A DNA stretch of 64,000 bases, from the NCBI GenBank assembly GCA_000708835.1, contig DF237192.1:59878-123877 (forward strand). Direction: 5' to 3'. Source of the stretch: Klebsormidium nitens (lineage: Eukaryota > Plantae > Klebsormidiophyceae). The notes below the pieces were generated by a model. It did no database searches, had not been told where the DNA came from, and was given only the letters and a program-made list of their open reading frames with translations. The position numbers and the translations under genes are program-made. Below are positions 13,821 through 52,404 of this stretch, piece by piece; position 1 is the first letter of the stretch; each line of letters opens with the position of its first letter.

Positions 13821-14707
13821 CTTACGGTCTTGCGTCTTGCTCACGTAGATGCAGAACATCTCTTCTTCTGGCGACTTAGCGGAAGGTTCACCAGGCTTTG
13901 GTCAGGCTACGCTCAATGAAGTGACTGCTGAACAGCACCTGCAAAGACTTCTGTCCTTTAGAGCTTCAGTGTGAAGAGTTTCTAATTTTGGCACGATCGT
14001 TGTTTGGCAAATGATAATTTGATGGTTGTAGAAGTGAAAGGATCAGCAAAGCTTGATGTTTTCCCGTATTGTGCGGGTTGGGTTAGGAGGTGGCCTTGGT
14101 TCGTATGCAAGTTGAAGATGCGCGTTTACCTGGAGCGCTCCCTACTCAGTTAATCAAGAATTGAATCTACCCTCAGCAGGTATCCACCCTCATATGTTTC
14201 CAACCGCAGCAGAACATCAGCTTGAGCCTTCGCTTTTCTGGTATTACTCCGCAATTTCAGCCTTCCATTATGGTCCGTCGGGAACGTTCAACTCTGAACG
14301 CGGCACGGAAAGATCTGTCGACCTTTGTGCGTCCTCGTGACTGACTCCTTATAATCAGCTGCCTCGAAAACCCGCATGAAGCAATGAAGTCGTTAATCGT
14401 GCTGGGATCAACGACCGCTTTGTTCTTACAGCCTCCTGACCGGGGTCACTCGCAATCTCTACCTTTCCTATCATCGTCTTGAGTCCCTCTGTTTTTTCGT
14501 TTGACTGTCTTTTTTGTTTTCAGGTCTACTCTTCTACATCGCTGTCGGTGCGAAGCATCCTGAACATAACCTCGCTGTAATCAGGGGTCGTCACCAAACA
14601 ATTGCCTTCTCCGCAGGATCCCCTCACCGCCCTGGAACGACCATTTCCTTCTGTCCCCTGCGGTCTAGTTTTCCAAAGCGGGTATTAATTCTAGTTTCTT
14701 CCCGCAG

Positions 14708-14992
14708 GGCATCCCCACCGTCGATCGCGCCGTGATCAACGACACCTCCAAGGACGGCGTCCGGTCCTACAACCTGCTCGTCGAAGGCACAAACCTCGCC
14801 GCGGTTATGGGCATAGAAGGCGTGGACGGCTTAGAAACGCGGAGCAACCACATCATCGAAGTGGAACACACGCTCGGGATCGAGGCGGCGCGCACGGCGA
14901 TCATGCGCGAGATCGAGTACACGATGGGCAGCCACGGGATGACGATCGACCTGCGGCACATGATGCTCCTGGCTGACGTCATGACGTACAAG
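14708..14992 (+). CDS. NRPC1: RPC1 exon J
   Basis: [11 protein letters not shown]...[23 protein letters not shown]...[15 protein letters not shown]; donor GTGAGG. Confidence 0.96.
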
Positions 14993-15462
14993 GTGAGGTC
15001 ACGGGAGAGTTGGTGATTATGGGTTGGGTAGCGGGGCTGTACTGTGATCGTTGTGGAAGCGGCTCGCTTTCAGCCGTGAGAATGCTTCACCTCTGCGGAA
15101 GTTAGGGTCACATGTGCCCAAGTGAGGAGACAGCTTGGTCAGCTGTACCTTGAAACCCATCAGCGAAGTTGTCTTCAAAACAGGCAGGTTTACTGCAAGA
15201 AGCGCTTGATAGCGTCTTTCAAAGCTATTCATTTGACACCAAACGTAAGAAGGCGACGTTTTCGACTGCGCCTGGAGCACCCCCGAAAATGTTGAATCTT
15301 TTGCCTGAAGCAGATTGGGTGGAGCGCGCTATATGGATCGCTCGAAACACTTGGCACCCTATCTGAGATGAAGAACCAGTGCCAGTTCCTGTTCTTTGAA
15401 TACTCAAAGCCCTTTCTTTCGATAAGGAGCACTCTTGACACGTCATATCCTTCTATTTGCAG

Positions 15463-21806: not shown

Positions 21807-22119
21807 ATTGCAAGCCGCAAAGCAAGTTGATCGCCCGTACGTACACGCGGCCTAACAGCTGCGGTTGTGCAAACTCATCATTCAATTTCACTTCGTAACA
21901 GGTCAACTATCAGCGAGTGCTATCATCAGTTGCGTCATCAGTTCGTGGATTCAGTCTCTTGCAAAAGATACGTAAAGAAAGTTCTAGAATAATAATTTCC
22001 ATCCTTACTGCCACGCCTATCAACGAAGTAATGAGTTGCTCCCTGAATATAGCCGAGGGTATTTCAATACAGGGGCACCTTGATCTCTATCTTCTTAGAT
22101 GCGTTCGTCTGCAGCAAAA

Positions 22120-22189
22120 AGCAGTGATGGGAGTGCATGGATTTGGGCTTCTGCTCATGCCAGTGTTTCATCTCACCAACCCTGACGCC
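22120..22189 (+). ncRNA. Box C/D-like member
   Basis: AGCA-GTGATGG...TGGGCTTCTGCTCA...CTGA-CGCC. Confidence 0.5.
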
Positions 22190-22995
22190 CTCTCAGGCTC
22201 TTGATATCTCCTTTCTGCGAGAGAATTTTAGGGGACTTTGGTCTGGTATCGGAGCGAATTGTTCTCTTCTCGATCATGCGCGCGGCTTAAAGTGGTAGCT
22301 GTTTGTTTTCTTGCGCTTGCTTGTGAAGAGTCCGAGTCGCTTGCAATGAACGGTCGTGATCCAGCTAGACGGGCTAGCTCGAAATTCAAGGATTTGACTT
22401 GCACAATCGTAAACGCTTTGGGAAAGACGATCCGACTCGCGTCGGTAAGCTTAGGTTTTCTGCTAACTCGCGGAAGGATGTTATGCATCGGACCCCCTTT
22501 CCCGAACGGGCAGCTGGACCTTTTCAGAGGAGATTAGAAATCAAGAGCCGGTACCGAGGCATCCTGGCAGGAAGAAATGTATGCCCTTTCGCCTCTACAT
22601 GGCTGAAATAGAGGGCTGCATCCTACCTTCGTAAACATCATGCCACATGTGAAGTCAGACGCTTTATTACGAACTACGATTGCGCGCACGAAGTAAATTG
22701 TCGTTTTCTTCGAAGCTGCTCAGTAGCGTGCACATGATTTGAATCCATGGGCGCTTCCGATTTATTTTGTCGTAGTCATCATTTGCTCGTATAATTGCCG
22801 CGCACATCATCCCCGATTTCAACTGCCAGCTCGATCACGCACATGGTAAGAAAGACGAGGGCCTCTGCTGGTCACTGGCCAACGAGGCGAAACTGAACCC
22901 GGATTATCGACGCTGCGGTGCTGACATGGGTCTGTATGGTGGTTAGAGTGATGCGCTGGCGCTTTCTCAATTGTGGGAGAAGCGTCGTTGTTGAC

Positions 22996-23060
22996 CGGCA
23001 GTGACGTACGACTGCGCATTGGGCTTGGGCTCTGGCCCACCTGCCTGCGTAATCGAAACC
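22996..23060 (+). ncRNA. Box C/D-like member, decayed 3' end
   Basis: CGGCA-GTGACGT...TGGGCTCTGGCCCA; D box and stem degenerate. Confidence 0.3.
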
Positions 23061-23564
23061 CAGCGCGGATGCCCTGAGCAACTCGAACCCGGGACGTGAT
23101 CCACGTGAAAAAGCGCTTGAATCACTAATAGTTGACTCCGGACTTTCAGTACCCCACAATTTGGGAACAAGTTGGGATTAAAATCTCGCGGGCGCCAGTG
23201 ATCAATATCACAGTACGTTTGGCCAAGGTGAGCAGAGCCGCTCATGCAGATTCAACTCACGCAAAGTGGCTCGGATTGCGCGCGCGCGCACAATAGCATT
23301 GCAGCGTGGTCAACTCACTGAATGCCAGTTTCAACGAGTGCTTATTCGACAACTTGCTATGACGAGACGATGCAGGCAACACCCCACAACAGCTAGACGC
23401 TGCTGCGGTTGGGGCCTTGCAGACGACAGGGGTGGAGATTAGCACCCCGTTTCCGTCTGGCCACGACATGCCGCGCCGCCGTGTGGTGCGGCCGCATACA
23501 GTGCGGGGACCAAGTGTTGTGGGTTTAGCTAGCCCGGAACACAAACGAGCGCGGCGCCTACTAG

Positions 23565-24200
23565 ACTCATGCGCGCGGCCGGCGCCGGTGCTGACTGATC
23601 CCGCGGCGACCAGTGGAGGCGGCGCTCCGCCGGCCCGCCGGCCAGCCTGATCGAGCCGTGTGATGCTACGCGGGTGCGCGCAGGGGCGGATTGGTTGACA
23701 TAGTGGTTAAACCACCACCGGGGGTATAAATAGTGCTGGTTACCAGCTTTGCCATAATCACCTTTCGCAACTTGAAAATTGCGACGGGCGCATTGGGCGC
23801 AACACTTACAACAAGGTCCTCCGCCGGCAGAAAAACAAGCCGTTTCTTTCCGTTTTGAGCGGCGGTTTCGACTTGGCCTCGCTCTATTGACTAAACTTGA
23901 GCCGTAGAAAGAAAGACCGCCGAAAACAGCGAAGTCATGCTTCTGTTTTTGGATTTATAAGCTCAAATTTCCATAAGTTGGAAGCATGCGCCTTCGGGCC
24001 GAAATTTGAATTCCGGTGGCCGTTGGCGAGAATGACAGCCGGTTTGCCCCAAGTTATACCCCCGGTGGTGGTTTAAGGGCAGGACTCCTCAGGTTGCCGC
24101 TCGCGCGCGCGCATTGAGAGATGAAGCCTGCCGCCCGCGGCGAGCCTGCGCAGCGCGACTCACGGCATGTGGCCAAGCGGGGCCCGCTGCTTTGCTTCCC
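23565..24200. promoter_or_regulatory. CGCG-rich island (interrupted by the MITE), candidate promoter of a ncRNA cluster
   Basis: High CpG/CGCG density, GATTGG; paralogous to 31060-31230; followed by C/D-like units at 24404 and 24731. Confidence 0.35.
23711..24072. mobile_element. TTAA-flanked MITE (piggyBac- or Kolobok-type target site)
   Basis: Perfect 19-bp TIR ACCACCACCGGGGGTATAA / TTATACCCCCGGTGGTGGT with TTAA on both flanks (23707-10, 24073-76). Confidence 0.8.
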
Positions 24201-24403: not shown

Positions 24404-24474
24404 GTGGCAGGGACGAAACGAACAGCGGCGACGAAAAGCCACGGGTCCGTGGGATTCGGTATATCCGACGCCAC
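24404..24474 (+). ncRNA. RGGAYGA-class C/D-like member
   Basis: GTGGCA-GGGACGA...CCGA-CGCCAC; lies just after a GTAAG donor-like site; paralogue of 31441. Confidence 0.55.
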
Positions 24475-24730: not shown

Positions 24731-24793
24731 GGCAATGACGACAGAAGCGGACTGGGCTCCTGCTCAAGCATGACTCTCCCCCAGTCTGATGCC
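24731..24793 (+). ncRNA. Box C/D-like member
   Basis: GGCA-ATGACGA...TGGGCTCCTGCTCA...CTGA-TGCC. Confidence 0.65.
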
Positions 24794-27887: not shown

Positions 27888-28019
27888 GCTGAATTTCTGA
27901 GCGCCTTCAATGCACCATGAAGGAAGCTCTTTGTTTCGTTTTACCCTCTACCAGGACGCTCTGTTTTGCGGTAAAAGCGTTGGGTGCTTGGGCTTTGCAA
28001 GTCGCAAGCTTCAAGCACC

Positions 28020-28290
28020 CTGCGGCCGCAGACGGAGCTTATGTGAACCGAGGCGTCGCGACCGCGGGCGTTCCGGCGCCTTGGCGGACGCGGGCGTTAG
28101 AAAGGCAGCGGCCGCGGTTGCGGGCTGGTCTGCGCGCCCTTGCTTTGTGCTGATGTGGCAGTGTTGCGACTGGTCATACAGTGGCAATACCTTATCATAA
28201 GCAGGAAGTCAAACGCAATGCGATTGCGCGTCGCTTGAGCGACCGCGGCCGCCAGAAAGCTCTTGGTCGCGGGCGCTGGGCACAGCGCAC
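28020..28290. promoter_or_regulatory. CGCG-rich island, candidate promoter
   Basis: GC/CpG-dense; paralogue at 34265-34500; both precede AGGACGA + RTGAYGA unit pairs. Confidence 0.35.
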
Positions 28291-28582
28291 TAGAGCTTGA
28301 GGATGGCAAATCTAGTGGGACGTACTATAGTGACGGGCTTGCGTCAAGGAACTTGTAAATACATCTGGTAAATCCATATTAATGGGCGGCCGCGCGGCTT
28401 GTAAGTCCATGTCAGAGATGATGGCGTATTGCGGTCCTGCGCCAGCAACTGGACTGGCCTTTAAGGAGTCATAATTGGTTTCGAACACGTAATTGAGCAG
28501 CCGTTCGCGCAATTGAACCATCAGTTTCTTCACCTCATCCGTTTTCTGCCGCTTTTGTCCCTCATCCTGAACGTTTGCCACA

Positions 28583-28647
28583 CGGCAAGGACGAGAGGCT
28601 TGTCTTTCGGACAAGATAAAGTCGTGTTCCAATACCAGTCTAAAGCA
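28583..28647 (+). ncRNA. AGGACGA-class member, degenerate D box
   Basis: CGGCA-AGGACGA...CTAA-AGCA; paralogue of 34834. Confidence 0.35.
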
Positions 28648-28666
28648 TAGGATCTTAGATTACTGC

Positions 28667-28729
28667 CGGCAATGACGACCCGTCCATTCTGGGTTCTGGC
28701 CCATAGACCTCCTTTTACGTCTGATGCCA
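28667..28729 (+). ncRNA. Box C/D-like member
   Basis: CGGCA-ATGACGA...TGGGTTCTGGCCCA...CTGA-TGCCA. Confidence 0.68.
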
Positions 28730-29650
28730 TGTGAAAAACTGAAGGCTCTTCAAGTTTGTGGGCCTCGTATATGCGCGACGAAACTACATATGCTGTCTAT
28801 GAGCAGCTCTCCAGCCCAAAACAAATTGGACCGGGCCATCGGCCTCAAGCTGTACTCACGTTCGCTACATCCGCGCGGGGAGCGCGAGCAGCCAAGCGTT
28901 TCCGGGCTCAACGAACCTGTGCGAGAGCACGTGGCCGGACTTAATTTGCGCCAACTTGTCCTGGAGCAAGCGAGGCTACTTAAAGTTGCACGGCGCTTGA
29001 TGTTTACTTGGGCTTATACGTGCAAACAGAAGCAAAACCGTCGAAACGGATGCTACATATGAAACCACTGATATTTTCTTAGGCAACGCGTTTCCTGGTT
29101 TGCTTGCGCGCACAAATCATCTGTCGAGACCTTTTTGGATCTCCTCACAGACATTAGAATCGTCCATTAATTTATCGTTAGATACATAGTCTGCCTTGGA
29201 TTCAGCTGCAGTGGCCGAGTGATCTTATCAATAAGGTAAATGGGTACCAGATGACACGAGTTGAAAATTCGAAATCTGGTATGACTACTTCCCTCGAGTA
29301 ATGCCTCTATGAGTCCTTCGCTTCACAAGCATTCTATCCGATCCTCTTATCGACTGGAAATGCACAAGGTTTCCGACGGGCGTTCCTGGTTTTTTCCCTC
29401 AGTTCTGGTCGCCGAACGAATGCCTCGTCATTCCTGAGAGCGCTCTATTTAACGAGGCAAGTAAGAGAGTCCCTGCTTTTTTGGCCAAGCGAGGCCGGTT
29501 CGAGTCTCCAATTGCGAACCCCGATTTCATTGATGCGGTCACTACGAATAGTGCTTTGAAACGCCCTCGTGCTTTCCTGACGGCGCAAACTGCTCAATTC
29601 AGTACGAAAATACATCCACCCACGTCCAATTCAAAAGAAGCTGCTAGAGA

Positions 29651-29718
29651 TGGCAGTGATGACAAGGCTCTATTGGGCTCCAGCCCATTGCAGCGTTACC
29701 TACCCGCTTCTGATGCTT
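29651..29718 (+). ncRNA. Box C/D-like member
   Basis: TGGCA-GTGATGA...TGGGCTCCAGCCCA...CTGA-TGCT. Confidence 0.68.
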
Positions 29719-30040
29719 CATGAAGCTCTCCAGTCAAGTTGATCTCCCTTGAAGTTGAGGGCGCACTTAGATTCTTTTAAAATAGAACCAATAGATACGG
29801 ACGGAATGGTTTAGGCAGATCCATATGCCACGATTTCTCCCATATATATTTTCTTAAGCGACCCGGCTTAGGATTGCGTTTTTCGCGGGTACGAACGTCC
29901 ACCGTCAGATCGAATCATCCCTTTTGACATGCTGGCGGCGATCAATATATGCGCGAGCATTCCTGGTGACACTCGATCGTTCTCTTCTCACGACCTTTGA
30001 TGCTTGTTGATATGCAAGGGCCTCCGGCACGTTCAAAAGT

Positions 30041-30118
30041 CGACAAGGACGAGTGCCAGCTGTGCTTCGATTGTTGGCCAAAACGAGGCCATGTCTTGTA
30101 TCAGCATTTCCGATGTCG
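30041..30118 (+). ncRNA. AGGACGA-class member with a compensated stem
   Basis: CGACA-AGGACGA...TTGGCCAAaacgaggcca...CCGA-TGTCG. Confidence 0.6.
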
Positions 30119-30235
30119 TCACTCCTGCGGGGCTTCTGGTGATTTAATAATGCGTTGTAGGTTCCTAATTTTCAGTAGCTTGTGTCTGTCCACTCATCCC
30201 GATGACGTCGTCGCTGCAGAAGGAGGGATTATGAA

Positions 30236-30305
30236 CGGCAGTGACGACTGATGATTCAAGTTCGGGCCGGCCCACAAGAAGTCAGATGATGTACCTGTAA
30301 CGCCG
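30236..30305 (+). ncRNA. Box C/D-like member, degenerate D box
   Basis: CGGCA-GTGACGA...GGGCCGGCCC...tgtaa-CGCCG. Confidence 0.4.
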
Positions 30306-30799
30306 TTTGCCGCTTCTACGTTTAGTCTCAGAGAAGACTTCTTTGAATTGAAGGCGCATATGATTCCATCTATCATGATTGACACAACTAGGGATCCGAT
30401 TGATCGGAGCAGTCTTTAGGAAAGTGCAATTATGGCCAGGCTAAGTCGGGGCGGCCTCAGGGCGTACTCGCGAAATGGTAGGCGCCGTACGCGTGCAAAG
30501 CGGTGGATAGCGCATACATACGCGTTCTCACCAGCCAACTCAACCAGATCATGTGACAAGCGGCCATGATGGACGTATGGGGGTTTCGACCTCAAAAAGT
30601 AAACATTCGTTCCTCCTTTACGAAGCTCCTGCACTTTGAAGCCAACTAAGCGGCCGGGGGGGCTCTGCCATGGCATTATTGCTAGGTTTGCCAACCTCGC
30701 AGTGACATGAGTTCCGCCGTTTGGTCGGCCGTACCGGTGGTGTTCTGCGGGCACTGAGGACATGAGCCTCGCAAAATTATTCTAGACTGGACGCGGGTG

Positions 30800-31210
30800 C
30801 CGGCCGCCGGTGCGGCCCAGCCTGTGCGCCCGCGCACGGCTGCGAGGTTCCACAGAGTCTGCGTGGCCGGATGCCGGCACCGTGGGCGCTGTGCATGTGA
30901 GGACGCGGCCGCGGCCGTGGCGAAAACCTGCCAGTTCAACGGTTAAGGAAACGGTTGACTTTAACGGTCAAGGCAGCCAGGCGGCGCCGCCGGGCCCGCC
31001 GACTGATCGACGGCGCCGCAAGCGCTGCATGGATTGCCGCCGGCGGCGACGTTGAGTGAGCTTGCGACCAGTGGAGGCGGCGCTTTGCCAGCCTGGCCAT
31101 GTGACAGTATGCGGGTGCGCACATGGGCGGATTAAGCCTGCCGCCCGCGCGAGCCTGCGCAGAGCGACTTTGCGGCGGCGAGTAGCGTGGGTCCAAGCGC
31201 GGGTCCCACG
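30800..31210. promoter_or_regulatory. CGCG-rich island, candidate promoter
   Basis: GC/CpG-dense; precedes units at 31441, 31771 and 32063. Confidence 0.35.
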
Positions 31211-31440
31211 CTGGTTTTGCTTCGCGTAACAGCGAGTTTTTCTTGGCGTTTGCAGTCTTCGAAGTGACGAAAATTAGTCCAGTGTAAATTTGGACACCGT
31301 CATTCCACCGGCAGAATCAGGACGGATTGTATGCAACTGCCAACCATTGCAACGTCTGATGGGCGCTTCAAGCTATTCCTTCACTTTCTCTGCATTTGTG
31401 AGTGCTTCGGTTATACAACATTCGATCGAAGTACGATTCG

Positions 31441-31509
31441 GGGCAAGGATGACAGGATTCAGCGGCGAACATGAGCCACGGCTTCTTGGGAATGGAAACC
31501 CCGATGCCA
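31441..31509 (+). ncRNA. AGGATGA-class member
   Basis: GGGCA-AGGATGA...CCGA-TGCCA; internal cagcggcga..agccacgg shared with 24404. Confidence 0.55.
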
Positions 31510-31770
31510 CTAACAGGCTTGTACTGTCACAGAAGTTTTAAAACTCCTCTTCCAGAGAAGTTTTGAAAGCTCGCCCGCTTTTCTCAGAAATAAATGGCCT
31601 CATCTTTGAACTGAGGTTCCGAAACGCACGGTCAGGGGGGAAGAAAAAGCTTTTGAAACGTGGGTGTGAACTTTACGTCAGCAACGCGCTAGTGCTCTGA
31701 CGCCGTTAATCAAGGTGCTGGCATGAGAAGATTACCTAGCCACTTTTGTTGTAAAAGAAGCGGTTACGGA

Positions 31771-31842
31771 CGGCAGCGACGAGAAACGCGGTTTGGGCTC
31801 CTCAGCGAGTTTGACACTTGCCAGCTTTATTCTTCCGAGCCA
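31771..31842 (+). ncRNA. Box C/D-like member, degenerate
   Basis: CGGCA-GCGACGA...TTGGGCTCC...CCGA-GCCA; paralogue of 37479. Confidence 0.35.
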
Positions 31843-32062
31843 AAGCAACATCTACAACGGTTGTCTTCAATACCGCAATGACGGGGCGAAGACGAGAGCC
31901 GTGAGTTCTTGCCAAATAAGGCCAAGGTCTTGGACTGCGCGCGATCCCATCGAATCCATGAGGATAACAAACATAAGATGCTGCCGTAGACTCGCTGTGA
32001 GTGGCAAATCGGTAATTTATGCTATGGTGAGTCGTTGTCCTCCCGGAAGCATTGCTTACGGA

Positions 32063-32127
32063 CGGCCGTGACGACACAGATGTTTGGGAATTTGCCCAGT
32101 GGACGGACTCCATATTCTCCGATGCTG
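32063..32127 (+). ncRNA. Box C/D-like member
   Basis: CGGCC-GTGACGA...TGGGAATTTGCCCA...CCGA-TGCTG. Confidence 0.55.
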
Positions 32128-33073
32128 GTCCAGGGTCTCTGCATCCCTTCATTAACATTGCCGCTTTTTGAGGTCAAATGCGGCACAAACAATGCAATTT
32201 GCAAAGCCGATCACAATGTTCGAGGGGCGACCGAAAAGTGCAAGAAACGGCCACATGGTCGATCTTCATCATCTAATAATGGAGTGTTTCGAAAGGTTCG
32301 TTGATCGGAATGACAAGCAAGCATGTGCCAGCGGCCGGACCTTCCGGTGTCAAATTTTCCAACCTGTACACCCCTAGCTAAAGTGGTGTCACACTACTTT
32401 CTCCAGCTCACACAGCGCTCCGAAGTCCTAATCTACTCATCAAACGGTGTTCTAGCCTTCGTTGGAAAGGGAAAGTATCGCCAGAACCAGCCGCGCGCAC
32501 GGGGACGGGGAACGCAGGAGGCAAAAGTCGGCATTCAATCGATTTTGCCGCATGAATGGACAAATCATGCTGGCGCATGCACGGATCGTCTTTTGGCGAC
32601 ACCTTTCTGCAGGTTACCAGCCTGATGTAGCCCGGCGGCGATGTGCATTAATACTCCCTTTGAAGGTGCTTGGGTGTTGTCCTGGAGCTTTATTCTTGCC
32701 CTCAGAAAGCGGTAGACAAAACGCCGACCAACGTAGTAGTTTCGTCAATCAGACTGGACTTAAGACATCATTGCCCATGTTGTTGCCCCTTAAGGTTTGA
32801 TGCGGCTCAGCGTGACAGTTACTAGTGATAGGTATATTTAACGGCTGCTCCAGATGGCAAACATGTGCCTAAGGTTTTCGATGTAATCGCAGTGCTTCCC
32901 TTTATGTCGTGATAAGATTTACTTTCATTGCAGACCTAACTTATTCCCAACCTTTCGAAAAAGTTTTGGAGTCTGGAAATCTGGAACCCACGGTTGCAAC
33001 ACGGATCCCACGGATGCGCATCATCTGCTGCACGATAAGGGAACCGGTTTACTGCGTTGATTTTACCTTTACT

Positions 33074-33159
33074 GCGGCTGTGATGAGGAGCACTTATAAG
33101 GCTTGCCGGGAATTGTCTCACCGGGGCAAGTGTTTCAAGGTACGTCCTTCTGAAGCTGC
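33074..33159 (+). ncRNA. Box C/D-like member, long form
   Basis: GCGGCT-GTGATGA...CTTGCC/GGCAAG hairpin...CTGA-AGCTGC. Confidence 0.55.
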
Positions 33160-33441
33160 GTCGTTTGGTCCTCTCCGACCAACCAGCTCTTGACACGTGT
33201 TGGCAATCATCTCCGCTGCTTACGCTGGTGTCCCCCTCTTTCTTCATGTCGTACGGCAACCGCCCGTTCTCTAACTTTAAGCTATCGTCTCTCGGACTGA
33301 GCCCGGCAGTTTAACGAAGCGCCTCAAATCTACCGACCGGAAGTCCTTCAGAATTGTGCTCGATGTACCTGATGATCATCGCGAGCCTTGCTCACCTGCA
33401 ACGTTAAAGGTCTCATTCTGCTCTCCGGGAAATTAGGACGT

Positions 33442-33516
33442 GTCAATGACGTCTTCGCTCTGGCGGTGGACTTCTAGTTAAAGTCCAACGGGAGGAATTT
33501 GTCATGATTTGATGCC
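33442..33516 (+). ncRNA. Box C/D-like member, degenerate
   Basis: GTCA-ATGACGT...TGGACTT/AAGTCCA hairpin...TTGA-TGCC. Confidence 0.4.
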
Positions 33517-33868
33517 CTAGACTAAGCGGGATATGAAAGAGGCGGCATTTTTTCAGTATTTTTGAGTGAAGTCTTGGGGCAGTAGGCCACAAAATCAATA
33601 TAGCTGGAAACTTGGTACTTACCAAAATCTCTGGATGGGCGAGAGGTTCTACAAATAAAGTGCAGTAATATTTGGGAAGCAAAAGCCTCCGCGTTGCTCG
33701 CCTAATGCGACGAGGGCTCTTTCTCATTTCGCGGTGTTACGATCATCGAAGACGTAATGCCGACGTCGTAGGTGAGAGCGTAACGTCAGCAAAGTGCTGA
33801 TCCTCTGAATCGTTCTAGTACGTCGTGCACACTTCCACGTAGATTGCCAGAGGAGGATCGGTTATGGA

Positions 33869-33930
33869 CGGCAATGGAAGCAAAGCCATGCTGGGCTCTG
33901 GCCCACCGAGCATCCCTGGCCTCTGATGCC
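33869..33930 (+). ncRNA. Box C/D-like member, degenerate C box
   Basis: CGGCA-ATGGAAG...TGGGCTCTGGCCCA...CTGA-TGCC. Confidence 0.5.
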
Positions 33931-34264
33931 CTACGTCGCAACTTTCTAGTGCTTCTAGTCTCAGTTTTGGCAACCTGCAAGGCGGGAAAATCAATCAGAT
34001 TGTTGCCTGACCGAAAACAAAGCGCTCTCGACTACTGGAAAGAAGGCCCAGGGCCAAGCTGGTCCAAGGCAATCGTGTGCTGTACTAAACTGTGACGTCA
34101 CGCATGCTCAGCGAGCGCGGAAGCGTTCCCCGCCGGCATCACACCCCAGACTTGACCACCTGTCTAACCCCTTCGAAGTCGCTTTGTTTTGACGGTAAAC
34201 GTGTTGATTTGGGTTTCGCAAGTTGCAAGCTTCGAGCACTCTGCGAAAGTTGAAGCGGGCTTGT

Positions 34265-34500
34265 GTGGACCGAGGCGCCGCGGCCGCGAGCCGCGCTCCG
34301 AGAATCTGACGGCCGCGGCCGCGGTCGCTCTGCGCGCCCTTGCTAAAAGCTGATCTGGCAGTGCCGCGACTGGTCGAACAGTGGCACCTTCCATATGCAT
34401 GACGTCAGACGCGACGCGATTGCGGGGCCGCCGGCTTAGAGCGGCCGCACGGCCGCTTGAGAGCGCTTGGTCGCGAGCGCTGAGCACAGCGCGCTCGCTT
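34265..34500. promoter_or_regulatory. CGCG-rich island, candidate promoter
   Basis: Paralogue of the 28020 island. Confidence 0.35.
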
Positions 34501-34833
34501 GAGGCCTTTACATCGGATCCCAACGGCAGCAAATGCAGCGTGACGTACTGTTGAGACTGGAGGGATCCTGCGGATAGATCTGGTGCAATTTGATTGGTCG
34601 GCGGCTTGTAAGTCTCTGTCATCAGAGAGAGTGACGTAGTGCGGTCCCGCGCCATCACCTACACACACACCTACACAAAAGGCGTCAAAATTGGTCTTTT
34701 GGCACGTTCTCGAGCAGCCGTTGCTGGGCGAGTGAGCCATCAGTATTTCATCCATATTTTAGGCTTTCATTTTTCTTCCCGCATCCTTCTTTGGCCACAA
34801 GTCTTTGCGAAATTTTGGGGATTGCTGGTTTAA

Positions 34834-34906
34834 GTGGCAAGGACGAGAGCGTTTGTACTTCTCGTCAAACGAGACCAACTCTCAGCTTTGACGACCCGGA
34901 TGCCAT
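34834..34906 (+). ncRNA. AGGACGA-class member
   Basis: GTGGCA-AGGACGA...CGGA-TGCCAT. Confidence 0.5.
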
Positions 34907-35019
34907 GACGTAATGTTGCGATGCGGACAGAGGTGACCTGTAAATACGTCAGCAACGCGCCGCTGCTTCCTTCAAACCGGTCTCGTGTCTCCACCCCTCC
35001 ACGTCTTTGCGGTAACTAT

Positions 35020-35084
35020 CGGCAGTGATGACGAGATTAATTTGGGTTTTGGCCCATCTCTCTTGTTCTTCTACGTCTGATGCT
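35020..35084 (+). ncRNA. Box C/D-like member
   Basis: CGGCA-GTGATGA...TGGGTTTTGGCCCA...CTGA-TGCT. Confidence 0.68.
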
Positions 35085-35651
35085 ATATGCAGCGTTTGAC
35101 GGCTATAGAAATTTGTCGCCTCGATAGGAGCCACGAACAGTGCGCAGAAGAACCATACAAAGCGCTTCGTAAGTCGTTTGCAAAGAGGAGCCGTGCAGTT
35201 CAGAACGAAGACAGGATAAAGCTGTACGGGTTGCCCTCAAGCTGTCCTTACGCGGCAACATCTGCGCGGCCGCGAGGGAGCATGCAGAAGCATTTACAGG
35301 CCAACGTCGACGAACCTGTGTGAGTGCTCGTTACAGCACGTATCGCGCCAACGTGTGCTGCAGCAAGCGTGGCTGATTAAGAATGCGCGGCGCTTGATGT
35401 TTGAACGGACTGCTAATCAACAGAAGCAAAACCGCTAAATTTCGGATGCTACATACGAAATTATAGATGCTTTCTTAGCCAACGCGTTTTCTGGGTTATT
35501 GCGCGCGCAAATCAGCTGTCTTTACCTTGGATTTCTTCTCAAGCGCCTGTTATTGTCCACGTTTCCGACGGGCGTTCCTGGTTTTCTTCCTCCGTTTTGG
35601 CCCGGCCCCCAAACGTGTTTCTTCGTCATTTCTGATAGCGCGCTAGTTAAC

Positions 35652-35722
35652 GTGGCAAGGACGAGAAGCCCTGCTTTCTTGGCCAAGCGAGGCCAACTAA
35701 TGCACTGGTCATCGATTTTGTC
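35652..35722 (+). ncRNA. AGGACGA-class member, decayed 3' end
   Basis: GTGGCA-AGGACGA...TTGGCCAAgcgaggcca; paralogue at about 29455. Confidence 0.35.
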
Positions 35723-36410
35723 AATCAGTATAGCATTTGATCTTAAACGTTCTGGTGCTTGAAGGCGCGAGGGTGCATACAATATTCGAGTTAGTGCGTT
35801 TCTTCCCATCTACGTACAATGCCAAAGAAGCCGCGTAACGGATGAGAGTGATCAAAGAACTTTTTGGAGCTGAGTCCGGCCTGGTTGCAGCCATCTGCCT
35901 TCTGATTCTTTCCAAAGCCTCCCATTCCTTTCACTTGGGTTCAAAGGCGCATATTAATATCTCTGTCTTCCATTAAACCTTAAGAAACGGACACAAGCAC
36001 TTCAGGCGAATCAGACACAATTTGAAGACTTCAAAGATCCCTCTTGGGCGACGCGGCTTCGCAATTCTTCTGCGTACAAAACGTCCACCGTCAAATCGCA
36101 GCATCCCCTTTCCATAGCTGGCGTCATTAGAAATGTGTATTGTCATTTCTGATGGGGTCTCGGTAGTTCTCTTACCTCAGCGCCCTTCGTTTGCTTGTCT
36201 TTATGGGCGTCCAATAGCGTTGTAACCCAATAACGATGAGAGCCTCGAAGTTGGCCAAACCAGGCCACGTGTATTATCAGCGCCGTTCGCGCTGTCAGCA
36301 ACAATGGCGCGATGCTTATGGCGTTTTATCACCGTGTTATTCTTTCTTGAAAATCTGTAGACTTTTAGAGAGTACGCTCAAATCTTGTTCCCCAGAGAAG
36401 AGATTAAAAG

Positions 36411-36472
36411 CGGCAGTGATGAGAGAGAAGAATTTTGGGCTCCGGCCCATTTCTGGCGTGCTTCTGATGCCG
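36411..36472 (+). ncRNA. Box C/D-like member (clearest consensus example)
   Basis: CGGCA-GTGATGA-N12-TGGGCTCCGGCCCA-N14-CTGA-TGCCG. Confidence 0.72.
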
Positions 36473-37260
36473 TTCGCAGCATTCAAAGCTCATTCTTGAA
36501 GAAACTTCGATGAGGGCGCACAGTATTATGTCTGTTAGAGGTGAAAGTACTAGACATCTGACTTTTAATCTGATCAGCACGTCTTGTGGAAAGAATGCAC
36601 ATGGCAAGCGCCGTCAGGGCGTACTCGCGAAACGCTACGCGCCGCGCACGTGAGGAAGCCATAGGCATCCAACACTTAGGCATTCTCACCGCCAACTCAA
36701 CCACAGGATGTGACAAGCGGCCGGGATGGACAAATGGAGATTCTCGCCCTCAAAAGTGAAGCTCCCGAAGCTGCTGCATTGAGGCACGTAAGAGCGCTCA
36801 ATTTCAGGTTTGCAAGTATGGCCCCAGCCCAAAACCGTAGCAGCGCGAGCGCGAAGATGCGCGCGCGGCCGCGGGTTCTCTGCGACGAGGCGACGCGGGC
36901 GCCACCCAAGTAAGCGGCCGCGGGTGCTCTGCCATTCAAATCACATGATGCAAGCGATGTTGAGGACAGTAGGTGCACTGAAAAATGCGTCCGAACTCTC
37001 ACACAGTCCGCTGTTGCAAAGGTCTCAGTACGTCTGTCTATCCTGGTCCGCTTTGAACGAACAAGCGGTCCCCAACGGCAGTGAAGTTTGACGAAGGCAC
37101 TTTGGGCTTCCCCCCAGTCTATTTAAGCAAAATGTCTCGCTGTGACGTCGGCCTATGCAGCTTCGTACGGCTTTTGAGCACCTCCCAAAGCCACTTGCCG
37201 CACTCAATGACTGAACGTCGTTTTTTGACGACCATCTCCGTTTTTGGATGCCACGCTAAA

Positions 37261-37340
37261 GTGACAAGGACGAGGCGGAGAGCATCTACCTTGGTGGCCA
37301 AACGAGTCCAGAATATATAAGCTTGCGACCCTGACGTCAT
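37261..37340 (+). ncRNA. AGGACGA-class member with a compensated stem
   Basis: GTGACA-AGGACGA...TGGCCAAacgagtcca...CTGA-CGTCAT. Confidence 0.6.
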
Positions 37341-37478
37341 CGATGGGTGCGCCAATCTAAGCAAGATTCGAATCTACATTGAACGCGCTGGTAATCCCCT
37401 GATACGAAAGAAATACTGGCAGCACAGTCATGATTAGACCTTGATCAATGTACTCTGTAAAACGAAACCGTCAGGGAC

Positions 37479-37547
37479 GGCAGTGCTGACGCAAGCGTTT
37501 TGGGCTTCGGCCCAAAGGTAAATATCTTGAGGCTTGCTTCTGATGCC
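37479..37547 (+). ncRNA. Box C/D-like member with a C(UUCG)G tetraloop
   Basis: GGCA-GTGCTGA...TGGGC-TTCG-GCCCA...CTGA-TGCC. Confidence 0.65.
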
Positions 37548-39408
37548 CCAACCCAGCTCCCGATATTACCTTTATAGGAAAGTTTGAAGGGCTAAGTTCA
37601 TACAAGATGACCGGGTGAGAGCGCGCGCATGTCGGACAGGCTGAGCCCAGGCCGCCGCTCCGAGTCAAGCTGCGCTCACGCAAAATCGTCGCCCGCGGCC
37701 CGGTTGCGATATCACAAGCGAATTGCAGCCGATCCATCTCAAAGTGCCTTTAACAAGAGATCGCGTGTGACACACGTACGTTTCGGGTGCCCATGATGAA
37801 AAAACAGGTACTTAGCAAAGTAGCAAGTCTCTCTGCTCAGTCCAAACTGTTGCGTTCGAATTTGCAAGGGTTTTCATCGTGGGTCGAGAGTAGGCGCACC
37901 GATACTCTGCTTGGGATCAGGCCGCAGGATGCTGCGAGCGCGGTGCGGCCGCGTACGTGCAAGATCAAACTAATAATTCAAGAAGTCGTTATGCGGGCGC
38001 TGTCCGCGCCACCAGGCAGCCGCAAGCTTTGACCGCACCGGAGGAGCGCTCGCGCGCGGGCGCTCGGTAGGTGGCGACGAGCGCGCGCGTGCGGGCAGCG
38101 CCGAGCGTGCCGCGGACTCAAAGATTAGCGTCCTTGCGAACCGGGTGACACCACAAGGATGCGCGCGGAGTTTTGCACTGGCCGACGGAGCCTCCGTGCG
38201 CATGCATCTTTTCCGGAGTGAACAGCTGGTCGCGAGCATTAGCAATGAAGCCTAGTGCTGCCGCGCGCTTGCGCAGCGCGTCTTCGTATCCCCAAGGAAT
38301 GTTCAACGCATGCCGCCTCTCTTATCTCTTTGCTCCAGCGATCATGCTTCGGTCGATCTCCATTCACTATTAATCGTTTCGCGGTTTAAGATCGTTTGCT
38401 GAGGTCGTTTCAATCTCAAATCTGAGCTCAAAATGGTCTGACACAAAGTTTAAGACCAGAATAGTCTAAAAAGCGTAATACTTTCAGGATCAAAATGGCC
38501 TCACAATGATCTTAGACCAGGCTATCATTTACAGTGATCAGAAGGTAGTAATGGATGTGGATTTGAGCCTCTGCTCAACTTTCGTCTCCCAGAACCTGAC
38601 GCCTTTCAGGCTCTTAGTAATCGCTTCAACGAATCTCTCAGTCCTTCGAATTTTATGAGACTCGATTTGGTGGCAGAGTCAACACAACGGATTCTCATTA
38701 CCCAAAGCGGTGCAGCTCATTGCCGTGAAGATCATTTGCGCATATCAACAGTCTTCCGGCTTATCCACAATCCAGACGTGCTCAAAGTTTCAAGTCAATC
38801 GCAAGCTCTCTGCAAGGAATCTAATCTGTCGCCTTTGGTGCCGGCAGGCGTACTAAGTTTCTTGCCAATCGTTAGAAATGAACCACGACTTGCCTTTTCT
38901 AAGCAGCCAAACGCCGTTTTCAAAGGAGCTGGAAGCTAGTGATACCCTTGTGAGTCCCCGGAATGTTGGGCACAGAAAGGTTATGTACGGCAGTTTTGAA
39001 TCAAATCAAAGGGGCGACAGCGCTCGTTAGATATGATGCCACGCAACGTGAATTCTTATAAGCTTTCTTGCGGGAAACTGGCTGCCTCTAGCCGTGGGTG
39101 AATGATCTACGCGCACGTACCAGTACTTCGTCATGTGCGCGCAACCCAATGACGGCTCACTAAAACGCGAGGACTCAGGTGGGCGTTCCTCATTTTCCTC
39201 CCTGAGCTCTGCTCGCTCGGCTAACGTTTGCGCCCGTCCTTGCAAAGCTAGGACTGTACTATCTCACGTGCGTAGCAGACGTGAGAAAGAGAGCCAAACG
39301 CGAGGCTTAGCTGAACCCTATTGTTTTGATGATGTGACCTGACACCATATCTGTTTGCACTTCAGCAACGCGGTAGTGGTTTAATCGTCGCGGAAGAAGC
39401 GACAGAAA

Positions 39409-39483
39409 GGGCAGTGAAGACTAAGCCAACGGTTCTGGGTTTCGACCCAGTGTTGACCTCGTGTTTACCCAAATCTGAGGCCC
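39409..39483 (+). ncRNA. Box C/D-like member
   Basis: GGGCA-GTGAAGA...CTGGGT-TTCG-ACCCAG...CTGA-GGCCC. Confidence 0.62.
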
Positions 39484-42715: not shown

Positions 42716-43569
42716 CTTAACAGGATGACGGGACTATCATACAGGAACTTGATTTCGAGAATTCGCAAATATGAGCGCAAACCCTTTCAGGCCATTTCGC
42801 ACGTCAATCTCAAACACATTCGAATCGTCGCGATCGGGATCAACTGATCAAACTTGGTGCACGAAAGAACTTTGGAAGGGGACGCGTGATCACTTCGTTA
42901 TATTGGACGGCCCTCTGTACATGGGCCGGGATGTGAGCGCCTTCAACACGAATTGGAATGTTTTGGAAGGGAATTATTTCTGCAGATTCATTTCCGGCGT
43001 GCCATTAGATCTCCAGATTTTGTTTTGGAACGAAGCTAAGCACATTTCCCTGTACCGCCCAATTAGTCCGGGCATGCCAGTTCTCGAGAACCTATTTATC
43101 AAGTTTGTCTTCTTTGCCGGCCTTGAAACGCTCGGGCGTAAAGCTTTTTCGTGGTTTGCCAAGGCGTCTTTGTCAACTCAACTGGTGAGACCAGTTCTGT
43201 CAACCATTCTTTGCAACGGATTGGCTCTGAGGACGACAAACACGAGAGCTTCTGCTCAAGATCAGTGTTACACCTTGACCCCGATGCCTCTCGGCCATCA
43301 TTACGGTAGCCGTCATTTCTCATTCCTTTTTCGAGAAGGGGTATCAAACAACGAATATCACCATGTCCAAAAGAAGCCTGCGGCTTACCATGAGAATGAT
43401 CACAGGGCTGCCGCGGGTTTTATTTTGCGTCTGAGATTCTGGCCACTGGACTCAAGGTCTGTTGGTTGGACCATCAAACTTCCAATGGAAGAAAGTGGCG
43501 CCACACGTTTTACTATCATTGAAACGTCCGGACCTGATGGAAGTGTCCCTCAACTGACGTTTGCGCTTG

Positions 43570-43649
43570 AGGCTTTGATGGTATCAGAAGCCTGGGACCA
43601 TACTTCTAATTGTCCCACTGCAGGTGTCCGCATATCTCATCTGAGGCCT
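43570..43649 (+). ncRNA. Box C/D-like member inside the 368-aa ORF
   Basis: AGGC-T-TTGATGG...TGGGAC/GTCCCA hairpin...CTGA-GGCCT. Confidence 0.45.
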
Positions 43650-43989
43650 TTGTGCAAGAAGGAAAACTATCTACAAACAAGTTGCTGTGTCCTAGAGTCG
43701 AGTCCAAATCCCGGATGGGACAACTCTGGGCTAGAATGTCTTCCTGGGTTTCTGCTTGCTTGCGCACCCCAAAGTCGACATCAATCAGAAGGCTGTTTCA
43801 GCTCGCGTCATCTGAAAGCCGAGCAACCTTTTGAGTTTCGTAGCGCACCGAGTGAGTGTAAGTTAGTCGACTCATGACTACTATGTTGTGCCGCTTTGTC
43901 GCCAACGCTCCTGCGCCGTCTCTGTTCCATCCGCCTGATGAAGGGCCGCTCACGAGCGTGTTTCTGGAGTCGGTCAGATCATACCGATG

Positions 43990-45557: not shown

Positions 45558-45625
45558 GTGGCAAGGACGAGATCAGCCTGTGGTTTGTTGGCCAAAGAGC
45601 AGTGCAGCATCTCTAATCGACGCCG
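45558..45625 (+). ncRNA. AGGACGA-class member
   Basis: GTGGCA-AGGACGA...TTGGCCAA...TCGA-CGCC. Confidence 0.45.
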
Positions 45626-45750
45626 TTGAGGGCGAAATGCTGTATGTATTGAGTAGAAAAGGCTTTCGACAATCCGCTAGGCTGAATTTCTGGAAAGATT
45701 TCAATACGCTCATTCATGCATCTTTTGCTGCAGAACAAAGAGGCAACTGG

Positions 45751-45820
45751 CGGCAGTGATGACAAAGGCGTTTTGGGCTCCGACCAAACAAGAGTTTTGA
45801 CATTGCTTGCGCCTGAAGCC
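45751..45820 (+). ncRNA. Box C/D-like member
   Basis: CGGCA-GTGATGA...TTGGGCTCCGACCAA...CTGA-AGCC. Confidence 0.6.
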
Positions 45821-46830: not shown

Positions 46831-47048
46831 GTGCTTTAGCTGATCCACTCAGATGTAGCAAGGGCAAGAGCCTGTGAATTTGATTCGACATCCAGCCGAG
46901 GCCTAGCTGAGAACTTCGGATTATTCGATGTTCAGATGCCAACTTTAGCCTGGACAATAAGGCAGCACCCTTCTGGTGCCTTTGTTACACAGGTTTTGCA
47001 TCTGTGTCTGGCACCCTCACTTTCAAAAGAGAGGAAGCAATTTTTGCA

Positions 47049-47124
47049 AGGCAGTGAAGACCCAACTGACACGTTCTCGTTCTGGGCTCCCGCCCAATCA
47101 TGGACCATGCATGGTTTTAATGCT
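47049..47124 (+). ncRNA. Box C/D-like member, degenerate D box
   Basis: AGGCA-GTGAAGA...TGGGCTCCCGCCCA...TTAA-TGCT. Confidence 0.4.
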
Positions 47125-47545
47125 CTGCTGGCGGCTTCCCATTGCCTTTTCAAGTCGAGTGCATACTAGATGATATGGCCCCGCCCGCAAACGAGGAATG
47201 ACCAGTTTAAGTTCAAGGCCCCCGGACATCAGAAAGAAGGCACATGGACGAGCTGGTCGGGGTGCGTTGGCCATGGAGGGCCCTCGAAATCAACTCAAGC
47301 AACAACCGATCACACAGTGACTTGACGAAAACGCTATCTTTTGCGACGCCCGGCGGCATTGTGTTTTGACTGCGCGTACGAACACGCACCTCTTTTCGAT
47401 TCTTCACTTCTCACCCACCACAGATGGCTAGAATGTTTAGTCATAAGTTCCGTTGGGCGGGCGTCGATTCTTGGTTCCTTCCTCCCAGCATTTTATCCAC
47501 GCCAAACGTAATTGTTGAAGTGTCTTACGCTATACTGCAGTAGCT

Positions 47546-47608
47546 GTGGCAAGGACGAGAGCCTCTGCATGCTTTGTTGACACAAGTACGAGGCCACTCT
47601 GATGCCAT
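47546..47608 (+). ncRNA. AGGACGA-class member
   Basis: GTGGCA-AGGACGA...acgaggcca-ct-CTGA-TGCCAT. Confidence 0.6.
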
Positions 47609-48109
47609 GTGGTCTGTAGGTGGATTGGACAGTGTTCCCGGAACGCGCGGGTTGATGTCTGAGTCTCCGAAGGCCAGCAAAGTTCCAAAGAATAATTGAA
47701 ACCATCCTTCCACGTACGTTGCAGAAGGGAAGGGCAGCTACAAACAGTTGTGATGGCAAAGATATTCTGGGCGTCGGCCCAACGGAAGCTCCTTTGGTTA
47801 TCTGCATTTTGGCACATTTGGAAGGAGATTCACATCCCGTTTCCATATATACGCATTAGTAAAATGTTAGTCCCTCGTTAGTCCCGCTAGCTTCCGTGGG
47901 AGCGTAATGAAACCAAGCTAAAGGCACCACATACAAAGTTCGACTGAAGCATGATGACCAGAGGAGAGCGGCTATGATGCCGAAGAGGGGGTCTTTGATC
48001 CAGTTTGCCCCCAGTTTTATCCATAAGCTGGCATTTACGACGTTGCGGCTTTCAGAGGTGAAAAGCATGATCTCAGGAATCTCGAGGGGCACTTCATAAC
48101 AAAGCTCTG

Positions 48110-49720: not shown

Positions 49721-49757
49721 TTCAAAGCCTACGGTACAGTCCGTTAAGGTCGCTAGA

Positions 49758-49820
49758 TGGCAGGGAAGTCAAATACGCAGCGCCGGGCTCTAGCCCAAGA
49801 ACTCCAGTACTTCTGATGCC
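49758..49820 (+). ncRNA. Box C/D-like member, degenerate C box
   Basis: TGGCA-GGGAAGT...GGGCTCTAGCCC...CTGA-TGCC. Confidence 0.5.
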
Positions 49821-50653
49821 GTGAAAGGTTTTGCAACTCAGGCCCTGAGTCGAACCGCGCGCCACGTGTTAGATTACTGGGCAACGATGAATTCAAGAGG
49901 CGCCGAGTACATTTGGAAGATGGCGCTGGGGGAAACGTCAAGCCGGCTCTGTGGGCCAGGATAATATTAGCCAACAAGGATGTGACGTGTTCTATAATCC
50001 GTATCCTTCTAGAGATCACTACTCCTGCAAAGCGTCAGAGTCAATCGGATCAGCCGACTTCCGGTATAAAGTGACATCAAAGCATTAAATCTCCAATCAA
50101 ATAGGGCTTCCCAAAGTAAGAAAAGAACACCAACCGTAAATCCTGATAAAAATCGTTTCAATGTGACATGCGAATATATGGCTTCAAATCTGTTTGTAGT
50201 TTGAAGAAGCGGACTTTATGTTAGCAGCTTCGGTCGTTGTTTCTCTTTAGCGGGTTAACCTTGTGGGTTTAGTATTTGACAAGGGCTTCTGCCAGCGGCT
50301 CATTGGGTCATTGGGAGTTTGAATTTGTTCAAACCACAAGGCCACTTTTCCATCTCGGTGGCAGTCACCCGTTATGGTAGAGTATTAGTAGGAAGTTTTA
50401 CAGATTGAAAGCGAAGTACAGTGCAGATGTATAATATGCTCAATGCTTCTTTACTTGGCTAGAGATCCAAAGAGAGTGATTATCAAACATAATTTCTGCC
50501 GGCGTTTCCCTTCTAAAATTTGTCGCAGTCATCTGAAATCCCGAAACCAAGGCAGTTGTAATAAACACCCAAACAAAGCAACGCTGATCTCACTCTAAAG
50601 AGTCTCAGAATGGCTCCACGATTGCCTCATAAATATGCAGACGCGGCCGTGGA

Positions 50654-50716
50654 TGGCAGTGAGGACGTCAGCGGAGTGATGGGCTCAGGCCAAGAGTAGT
50701 AGCCATCCTGAAACCA
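50654..50716 (+). ncRNA. Box C/D-like member, degenerate
   Basis: TGGCA-GTGAGGA...TGGGCTCAGGCCAA...CTGA-AACCA. Confidence 0.4.
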
Positions 50717-51669
50717 TACCGCTTGCCGGGCCATTTTTATTTCAGACTGCGCGCTACACACTGCCACTTAGCAAATGACTGCGCAACTCACGCGAGGTCG
50801 TACTCGAGCTTGAAGCAGATAGTTCGAAGCCCGGTCGAAGCATCTGATCCATGCAGAGCAAGAGCGACTAGCGCTCTGACTTCGACGTGCGCGTCCCGCA
50901 AGGACTCAGGCTTGCCTACGATTGCACAAGGGATACAGAGGCGGCTCGTTGTATCGTATGAAGCAGTTCTAGTACAAAGCGAACCTGATTTTGATAGAGG
51001 CTTTGACGGTTTCCAAAAGCATGGGGTTCTCCTAGATCTTAGGATAGTCCTACTGCAGGACTCGTCCAAGGCCAACGCACGAGAAAGAAACGAATGTTGA
51101 GCGGCTAGCTGTGTCCGGGATTCGACCCAACCATGGATGATACAAATTAAATCCAAATGTGACCATCTTCTTCTTCAACTTCAAAGAACGATGTTTCCAG
51201 CTTGCGTGGTAATCGAAAGGCATCGAGCATCCTCTGATAGCGCATGCCGAGTTGCTGCCTTGTGAATGCATGTAAGGCGTAGCTTTCCAGAGAGCGTAAA
51301 CGCTAGTGACTGCTCCCCTTTTTGTTATTGTATGTACAGACTGTACAGTCGCGTGATCACTCAAGATTTTGCCATAATGGTCGCCAAAGCTCCTGCGCTG
51401 CATTTGTTCCATATAACTGATCAAGGCCCATTCACAAACGTATTCGGCGTTGGTCAAAGCTTGCTAGCTTATAGCAATGCCGTCTAAAAGACTATATTGG
51501 GCAACCGTGACCGAGATAGTTACTGGGACCGCTTTCCAAGTTTCCCATGTCTGATTGTGCTTTCTACCTCAACATGAAGCTACTTGTCAATGTAGCCAGA
51601 GCAGAAAAGCAAATCTCCTCGTGAGCACGTTTCCAAGGTAGTGTGATTCAAAGCGGTCATTGGAACGCC

Positions 51670-52050: not shown

Positions 52051-52332
52051 TGGCCAGAAGCTTACGAATTTTATCATCGCAGCCGTGCTTCAAGGGTTCA
52101 GCACGGCTGAACGGCAAAGGGGTTAAAACTGGTTTAGTGCAATAAGCGCGGGTGCACCAGGTTTCTCGGTCGAGGCAGTGAGCGACGTAACGGGCGCGGG
52201 TTATGGAGACGGATACGGGGTCAAAAGAGGCAGTCATTTCGGCTTGATTACTGTTTCAGTGAAGCGGGCTAAACTTTTTCAAATCCAACACCACTATGTA
52301 CCGTCCATTCAGTGATTCTGTTTGTCGGTGAA

Positions 52333-52404
52333 TGGCAATGAAGTTGAATAGATCTTGGGACTTCAGCCCCGGGGCCCATGCCTCCTTCACAAGCTCCTGA
52401 CGCC
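52333..52404 (+). ncRNA. Box C/D-like member
   Basis: TGGCA-ATGAAGT...TGGGACTTCAGCCCC...CTGA-CGCC. Confidence 0.45.

Follow-up and report, generated by a model that had tools for sequence, protein, structure and literature searches.

Known snoRNA arrays and the Klebsormidium locus

The SNORD116 array of eutherian mammals, composed of genes for small nucleolar RNAs (snoRNAs) of the box C/D class, evolves by birth and death, with conservation strongest in the standard snoRNA elements (PMC8789076). The snoRNA clusters of plants and green algae are processed from a common precursor, and their host genes often have ties to ribosome functions or to growth (PMC2875012; PMC7671301). Here we analyse 64,000 nucleotides (nt) of the genome of the streptophyte alga Klebsormidium nitens (GenBank assembly GCA_000708835.1, contig DF237192.1, positions 59,878 to 123,877 of the forward strand), below called the window; all positions are counted from its first nucleotide. 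The window contains the 3' part of RPC1, encoding the largest subunit of RNA polymerase III, and downstream of it, on the RPC1 sense strand, what appears to be a strand-locked array of about 30 kb in which box C/D-like units of two types, A and B, alternate, and which seems to have grown by tandem and segmental duplication. We assign a probability of about 0.6 to the reading that this is a lineage-specific array of orphan box C/D snoRNA-like units evolving by birth and death, where selection would act on the scaffold forming the ribonucleoprotein (RNP) and the antisense position would be unconstrained.

The locus resembles SNORD116 and SNORD115 (PMC8789076, PMC12429941) in having dozens of C/D units on the same strand, produced by tandem duplication under a birth-and-death regime, in the boxes and the terminal stem being the most conserved parts, in the lack of a ribosomal RNA (rRNA) target, for the Klebsormidium units within the rRNA examined, and in the long non-coding host region. 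However, some SNORD116 copies retain one antisense element under selection, and expression of the array from host introns has been demonstrated, whereas the Klebsormidium units, known here from sequence alone, have no antisense element conserved above neutral drift, carry a hairpin in place of the C'/D' boxes, and alternate between two types. With the clusters of Arabidopsis (PMC2875012) and Ostreococcus (PMC7671301) the array shares the location of several genes on one strand, and one unit here lies in an RPC1 intron. On the other hand, these clusters hold different snoRNAs, most of them with Rfam families and with targets in rRNA or small nuclear RNA (snRNA), whereas the units considered here derive from one or two scaffolds as paralogues and matched neither the rRNA examined nor any Rfam family. 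We found no paper on Klebsormidium snoRNAs or on arrays of this kind. The RPC1-linked locus is distinguished by the linkage itself, by its A/B module, by a spacer fixed at 11 nt, and by the possibility of comparing rates within it.

Structure and conservation of the A-type units

In the A-type unit, of about 65 nt, GGCA and box C (RTGAYGA) are followed after an 11-nt spacer by the hairpin TGGGC-N4-GCCCA, and this in turn, after 14–25 variable nt, by box D (CTGA) and TGCC. With box C near the 5' end and box D near the 3' end, these units fit the structural definition of box C/D RNAs. A covariance model was trained on eight units, which themselves score 61–68 bits (E about 1e-15 to 1e-17), and run over the window. 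It yielded 21 matches at E<0.08, all of them on the plus strand and spanning 22.1–54.7 kb (the extent of the same-strand array is 22118–54654), plus one at 3521–3585. The 5' motif GGCARTGAYGA with at most one mismatch occurs 39 times against 4.5 expected, and 36 of the 39 occurrences are on the plus strand. In architecture and copy number the A-type units are far above chance, and all the copies lie on one strand.

Conservation is distributed unevenly along the unit. In pairwise comparisons of the eight best units, the identity equals 1.0 in the 5' stem and in box D, 0.83 in the 3' stem, 0.81 in the hairpin, and 0.70 in box C, whereas at distances above 7 nt upstream of box D it is 0.18–0.32, and in the flanks 0.31–0.33; that is, the distal part of the guide segment is identical among units at the random level. 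The constant parts are those that define a box C/D RNP, namely, the 4-bp terminal stem and boxes C and D, together with the short hairpin 11 nt past box C. The antisense element is not conserved among the paralogues, as it would be expected to be in a methylation guide.

The spacer on the C side has 11 nt in eight out of eleven units, whereas the length of the D-side segment varies from 14 to 25 nt. The fixed spacer may reflect a requirement for a set distance from the kink-turn to the hairpin. It has a weak consensus, CAAAAGCGTTT, with 4.0 bits versus 1.1–2.2 bits in the flank controls. The related copies at 36412, 37479 and 45752 share GGCKTGCTT-like cores next to box D and 6–8 of the 11 spacer positions; 36412 and 37479 agree at eight out of ten D-proximal nucleotides. 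Such shared cores are expected from common descent.

Canonical boxes are seen in the units starting at 24731, 28668, 29652, 35021, 36412 and 45752. The best preserved pair is 28668–28728 (67.8 bits, box C ATGACGA, a 17-nt variable part) and its positional paralogue 35021–35084 (64.9 bits), both fully canonical. The canonical unit 29652–29717 has a decayed paralogue at 35842–35910, and the canonical unit 36412–36471, with a 13-nt spacer, has a paralogue at 30237–30313 that lacks box D; both pairs were identified by the covariance model and alignment. The hairpin of 24731–24793 contains a G-U pair, and 45752–45820 combines canonical boxes with a decayed hairpin and the 3' stem AGCC. Box C is variant or damaged in the units at 33870, 37479, 39410, 3523 and 49759. 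It reads ATGGAAG in 33870–33930, GTGCTGA (A4 replaced by C) in 37479–37547, which has the D-proximal GGCKTGCTT in common with 36412–36471, and GTGAAGA in 39410–39482 (31.9 bits), where the hairpin TGGGT/ACCCA represents a compensatory U-A pair. The weaker or decayed matches, also on the plus strand, are at 22118–22191, 22995–23075, 30235–30313, 31770–31867, 32062–32128, 33074–33159, 35842–35910, 37075–37164, 47048–47126, 47744–47807, 49757–49822, 50653–50717, 52332–52406 and 54595–54654.

Several A units (for example, those following 29608–29645, 35800–35840, 45715–45745 and 47705–47740) are preceded, about 25–45 nt upstream, by the conserved motif CCACGTAC ... TGCAG|AAG, whose TGCAG resembles a 3' splice site.

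Divergence within a segmental duplication

The array contains a segmental duplication of about 2.7 kb with copies at 27957–30597 (P1) and 34180–36755 (P2), both on the plus strand. In self-BLAST the duplicated blocks are 68–80% identical, and in the global alignment 65% of the ungapped and 52% of all columns match. The duplication includes three positional pairs of A units. Both copies are intact only in the pair 28668/35021, since the second copy has decayed in 29652/35842 and the first copy has no box D in 30237/36412. Hence the comparison of rates relies on the intact pair.

In this pair, 29 out of 33 scaffold positions are identical, compared to 15 out of 31 in the variable parts and 117 out of 353 in the 100-nt flanks, with gap columns counted. 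The scaffold differs significantly from the variable parts (p=0.001) and even more so from the flanks (p=7.5e-10), whereas no difference between the variable parts and the flanks is seen (p=0.11). Next to box D the two units share nine out of eleven nucleotides (TCCTTTTACGT and TTCTTCTACGT), roughly what is predicted by neutral identity of 65–70%. The guide-position segments drift at the rate of the surrounding DNA and not faster, while the scaffold is held. As the divergence of the variable parts equals that of the flanks and of the whole duplication, this is neutral drift with no diversification.

These data allow for an assessment of the original prediction, which had described a conserved scaffold with guide-position segments that are hypervariable even between duplicated paralogues. 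The five segments upstream of box D quoted in its support occur in the window verbatim, and the positions quoted with them are those of the unit starts. The segmental duplication is real, with 28668 and 35021 as positional paralogues, and so is the contrast between the scaffold (0.70–1.0) and the distal guide (0.18–0.32); the boxes are much more conserved than the guides. However, hypervariability does not survive the comparison with the flanks, and the statement that often only the last 4–5 nt before box D are shared does not apply to the intact pair.

Two other old duplications are seen in the array, 40319–41184/44356–45223 and 43986–44236/51553–51776, with 72–75% identity.

B-type units and evidence for RNA structure

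The alignment of ten modules shows that the B-type unit follows the plan of the A unit, with GGCA and the box C variant AGGACGA before a first spacer, then the hairpin TTGGCC-AAGCGA-GGCCAA, a second spacer, YCGA or CTGA in the place of box D, and the 3' stem. Each B unit is situated 179–216 nt (about 190 nt) upstream of an A unit, every A unit being preceded by one, and together they form a B-A module. One example is 35654–35719, with GGCA, AGGACGA, the complete hairpin, TCGA and TTTT; further B units are at 29456–29528, 30042–30117, 31885–31948, 34836–34904, 36229–36296, 37263–37338 and 45560–45624. The unit 47548–47606 ends with a fully canonical CTGA-TGCC, whereas 28584–28640 is truncated. 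All are on the plus strand.

In the B alignment, the stem pair formed by columns 4 and 89 is G-C in four copies, A-U in three and G-U in two, with no broken cell, and 80% of the cells in the B stems pair, whereas sliding the partner column leaves 29–45%. These pairing changes, seen in nine sequences, are suggestive only. For the A units, the two stems pair in 92% of the cells and the terminal stem GGCA/TGCC, considered over the 21 matches, in 90%, in both cases versus 28–44% with the partner slid. Taken singly, the units fold with ordinary stability (z between −1.7 and +0.5), as is normal for C/D RNAs. No structure common to the entire module was found in the aligned B-A modules. Pairing between the spacer and the guide as a hidden stem was also considered, with the summed p=0.04, but this value is driven by one unit and the pairing is not general.

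Three related B copies carry a compensatory change in the terminal stem, with GACA/TGTC or GACA/CGTC in place of GGCA/TGCC. A third type of unit is found at 24406–24472 and 31442–31508, with GGCA, RGGAYGA ... CAGCGGCGA ... CCGA, YGCC and ACTA. Each of these two units comes after a GC-rich block, and the blocks, at 24107–24160 and 31117–31169, are 85% identical. GC-rich blocks dense in GCGGCCGC, which occurs at 22 sites of the window where 1.5 would be expected, separate groups of modules; they are located at 28000–28400, 30800–31200, 34240–34500, 36850–36930 and 37600–38100 and begin both copies of the duplication. These blocks might serve as promoters or represent a further repeat.

Interpretation and alternatives

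Under the favoured reading, the units would be cut out of a long RNA polymerase II precursor, which might come from a host gene, from read-through, or from transcription of the array in its own right. Snu13, Nop58, Nop56 and fibrillarin would assemble on the C/D kink-turn, and the assembled RNP would protect RNAs of about 60–75 nt from exonucleases. Selection would then depend on making an RNP and not on any fixed antisense sequence, and hence the units would be snoRNA-like orphan RNAs under birth-and-death evolution and not a library of guides.

Several observations weigh against this. Only five or six of the 21 A-type matches are fully canonical, the remaining ones (about 15) having a damaged box, stem or hairpin. 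There is no internal C'/D' pair, as neither UGAUGA nor CUGA was found inside the A units, and the hairpin 11 nt past box C occupies this place; C'/D' boxes are often degenerate in eukaryotes, making this a weak criterion. Covariation is not significant: the A stems are kept mostly as sequence, with two double changes, and 72–118 of 500 shuffles do equally well. No listed sequencing run covers the stretch, and no contig from four transcriptome-like assemblies falls on 31700–37699, which is weak evidence, as these are contigs, probably poly(A)-biased, in which small RNAs would not appear. Finally, the rRNA set used in the target searches below comprised neither K. nitens rRNA nor complete 18S or 25S rRNA from the green lineage, the green loci being partial.

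Some of these observations speak for a dead array, that is, one that consists of decaying repeats derived from one or few former snoRNA genes and is no longer transcribed or processed, with the conservation of the scaffold produced by ascertainment and the youth of the best copies. The lesions, the lack of RNA contigs and the non-significant covariation would all fit it. However, the eight copies are 70–100% identical at the 33 scaffold positions, while the adjacent DNA and the DNA between the boxes is at the random level and variable in length, and inside an old duplication the scaffold is retained (29/33) and the flanks are not (117/353). Conserved patches of 4–14 nt between diverged segments of variable length are not easily produced by gene conversion, and neither conversion nor neutral decay would spare only such patches. 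We consider a dead array unlikely.

The next alternative is that these are ordinary methylation guides, each subfamily keeping a D-proximal antisense core, with targets outside the tested set: expansion segments of K. nitens rRNA, external or internal transcribed spacers, snRNAs, tRNAs, or mRNAs. The unit geometry permits a guide at box D. Related copies do share 8–11 D-proximal nucleotides (9/11 in 28668/35021 and 8/10 in 36412/37479), and both differences in the former pair are U/C, so that the two sequences could pair with the same G. On the other hand, this sharing is predicted by common descent at the local neutral rate, and the distal guide parts differ in both length and sequence even between close copies.

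In the searches for targets and families, Rfam 15 matched nothing in the window at the gathering score, and over 21–56 kb not even E≤5 brought up a snoRNA family. To compile conserved rRNA words, 120 eukaryotic rDNA loci were gathered from metagenomes with a 5.8S motif, a motif not seen in viral contigs, their rRNAs being annotated (two loci) or mapped by BLAST. Whole units have 13 antisense occurrences of 10-mers common to at least four of the 120 loci, against 14.5 expected from shuffles and 18 in the sense control. Contiguous pairing including the fifth nucleotide upstream of box D was assessed against 70.7 kb of rRNA from 17 eukaryotes; the best p over 15 guides is 0.10, with or without G-U pairs, although true guides of 10–11 bp would not stand out in this setting. 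As a control, the guide-pairing search recovered each guide's own antisense (20/20). Simplified snoscan of the whole window was meant as a positive control and yielded none. No complement above chance was found on the plus-strand RNA of the window, RPC1 included. Thus the original expectation that ordinary snoRNAs would reveal themselves by guides matching rRNA was put to the test, and no match above chance appeared in the rRNA examined. Given the gap in the rRNA set, the reading of the units as ordinary guides retains some weight, but we regard it as improbable.

Two candidates encountered in these searches were rejected. The segment 13762–13819 on the plus strand, in an RPC1 intron, is a hairpin-less C/D-like sequence (GGCA, ATGACGA ... 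CTGA, CGCC) with an 11-nt pairing to the large-subunit rRNA. The matched rRNA stretch is variable, occurs only in one protist clade, and is absent from the green-algal locus; the pairing is probably due to chance. At about 50745 on the minus strand, an 11-nt complement to the universal 18S sequence GCGCGCTACAC lies 4–14 nt upstream of CTGA, but there is no box C within 140 nt.

Very improbable, in our view, is a functioning library whose antisense slots, freely changing on a constant scaffold of C/D boxes and hairpin, would be directed against non-ribosomal RNAs (mRNAs, transposons or viruses), with fibrillarin-based action and new specificities arising by duplication and drift. Its stronger form, with the guide slot under positive selection for new targets in mRNAs, transposons or viruses, is likewise very improbable. 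There are indeed many different guide-slot sequences on one scaffold, and the 11-nt C-side spacer of 28668/35021 is identical at only four positions out of eleven, under the local average. However, the overall divergence of the variable parts equals that of the flanks, no local targets are seen in the window, and neither acquisition machinery nor spacer-like regularity is visible. Four 20-nt guide ends were compared to 2.9 million viral contigs from IMG/VR, with a single match. There, the 22 nt at positions 7010–7031 of the contig are identical to part of the guide segment of unit 35021; they lie inside an open reading frame (ORF) for a CHASE2-adenylate/guanylate cyclase, and the guide would be antisense to the cyclase mRNA. 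As this is a bacterial-type gene on a contig with 35–39% GC and the matching word is pyrimidine-rich, the match is most simply attributed to chance and was discarded as a viral target. Of the two readings that the original prediction had left side by side, the diversifying library is disfavoured, with the divergence equal to that of the flanks and most copies decaying, whereas the guide-less scaffold gains support, the scaffold being constrained and the antisense position free.

Hardly credible, finally, is a DNA-level element, where the palindrome TGGGCY...RGCCCA would be a paired protein-binding site and the C/D likeness incidental: the hairpin is indeed kept more as sequence than as structure, and TGGGCY resembles the plant site II (TCP-like) promoter motif, but the palindrome is always 11 nt from box C and enclosed by the C/D pair and the complementary terminal stem, all copies have one orientation, and the U-G and U-A variants preserve pairing.

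Genomic context

The part of RPC1 present in the window extends over 2874–15016 on the plus strand, as identified by motifs and Pfam. The bridge-helix exon is at about 2874–3032 and the trigger-loop exon at about 7750, both recognized by motifs, and Rpb1 domain 5 is found in 14732–15016 (PF04998, E 7e-18). An A/B-like unit at 3523–3583 (28.4 bits) lies within intronic RPC1 sequence, on the sense strand. A sense-strand unit inside an intron is the classic snoRNA arrangement.

The motifs GGCAATGATGG ... CTGA at 11773–11836, 12302–12362 and 12865–12926 (plus strand) belong to a duplicated 'exon echo' region of RPC1. They were rejected as snoRNA units, as the likeness to box C is coincidental in a repeated, probably exon-derived sequence.

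No tRNA genes were found in the window, and Pfam matched none of the ORFs tested in the interval 16–58 kb. One ORF starting with ATG and encoding 368 amino acids is located inside the array at 42771–43877 on the plus strand; Pfam does not match it, and an exact search of the gene collection retrieved no record of it. Exact look-ups of three ORFs from the window retrieved no related locus. A large protein search starting from the RPC1 bridge-helix exon retrieved nothing but fragments from unrelated eukaryotes, at identities of at most 91%, and no close relative.

Implications

Two concrete features lend themselves to testing: the fixed 11-nt spacer with its hairpin where C'/D' would be, and the alternation of A and B units in modules. 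If the units turn out not to be expressed, the locus would be a striking snoRNA-derived repeat expansion of modest interest. If they are expressed, the array would match the SNORD115/116-type arrays as an independent counterpart outside the mammals, in a streptophyte alga, and Klebsormidium would provide a tractable organism for the long-standing question of what arrays of target-less C/D RNPs do.

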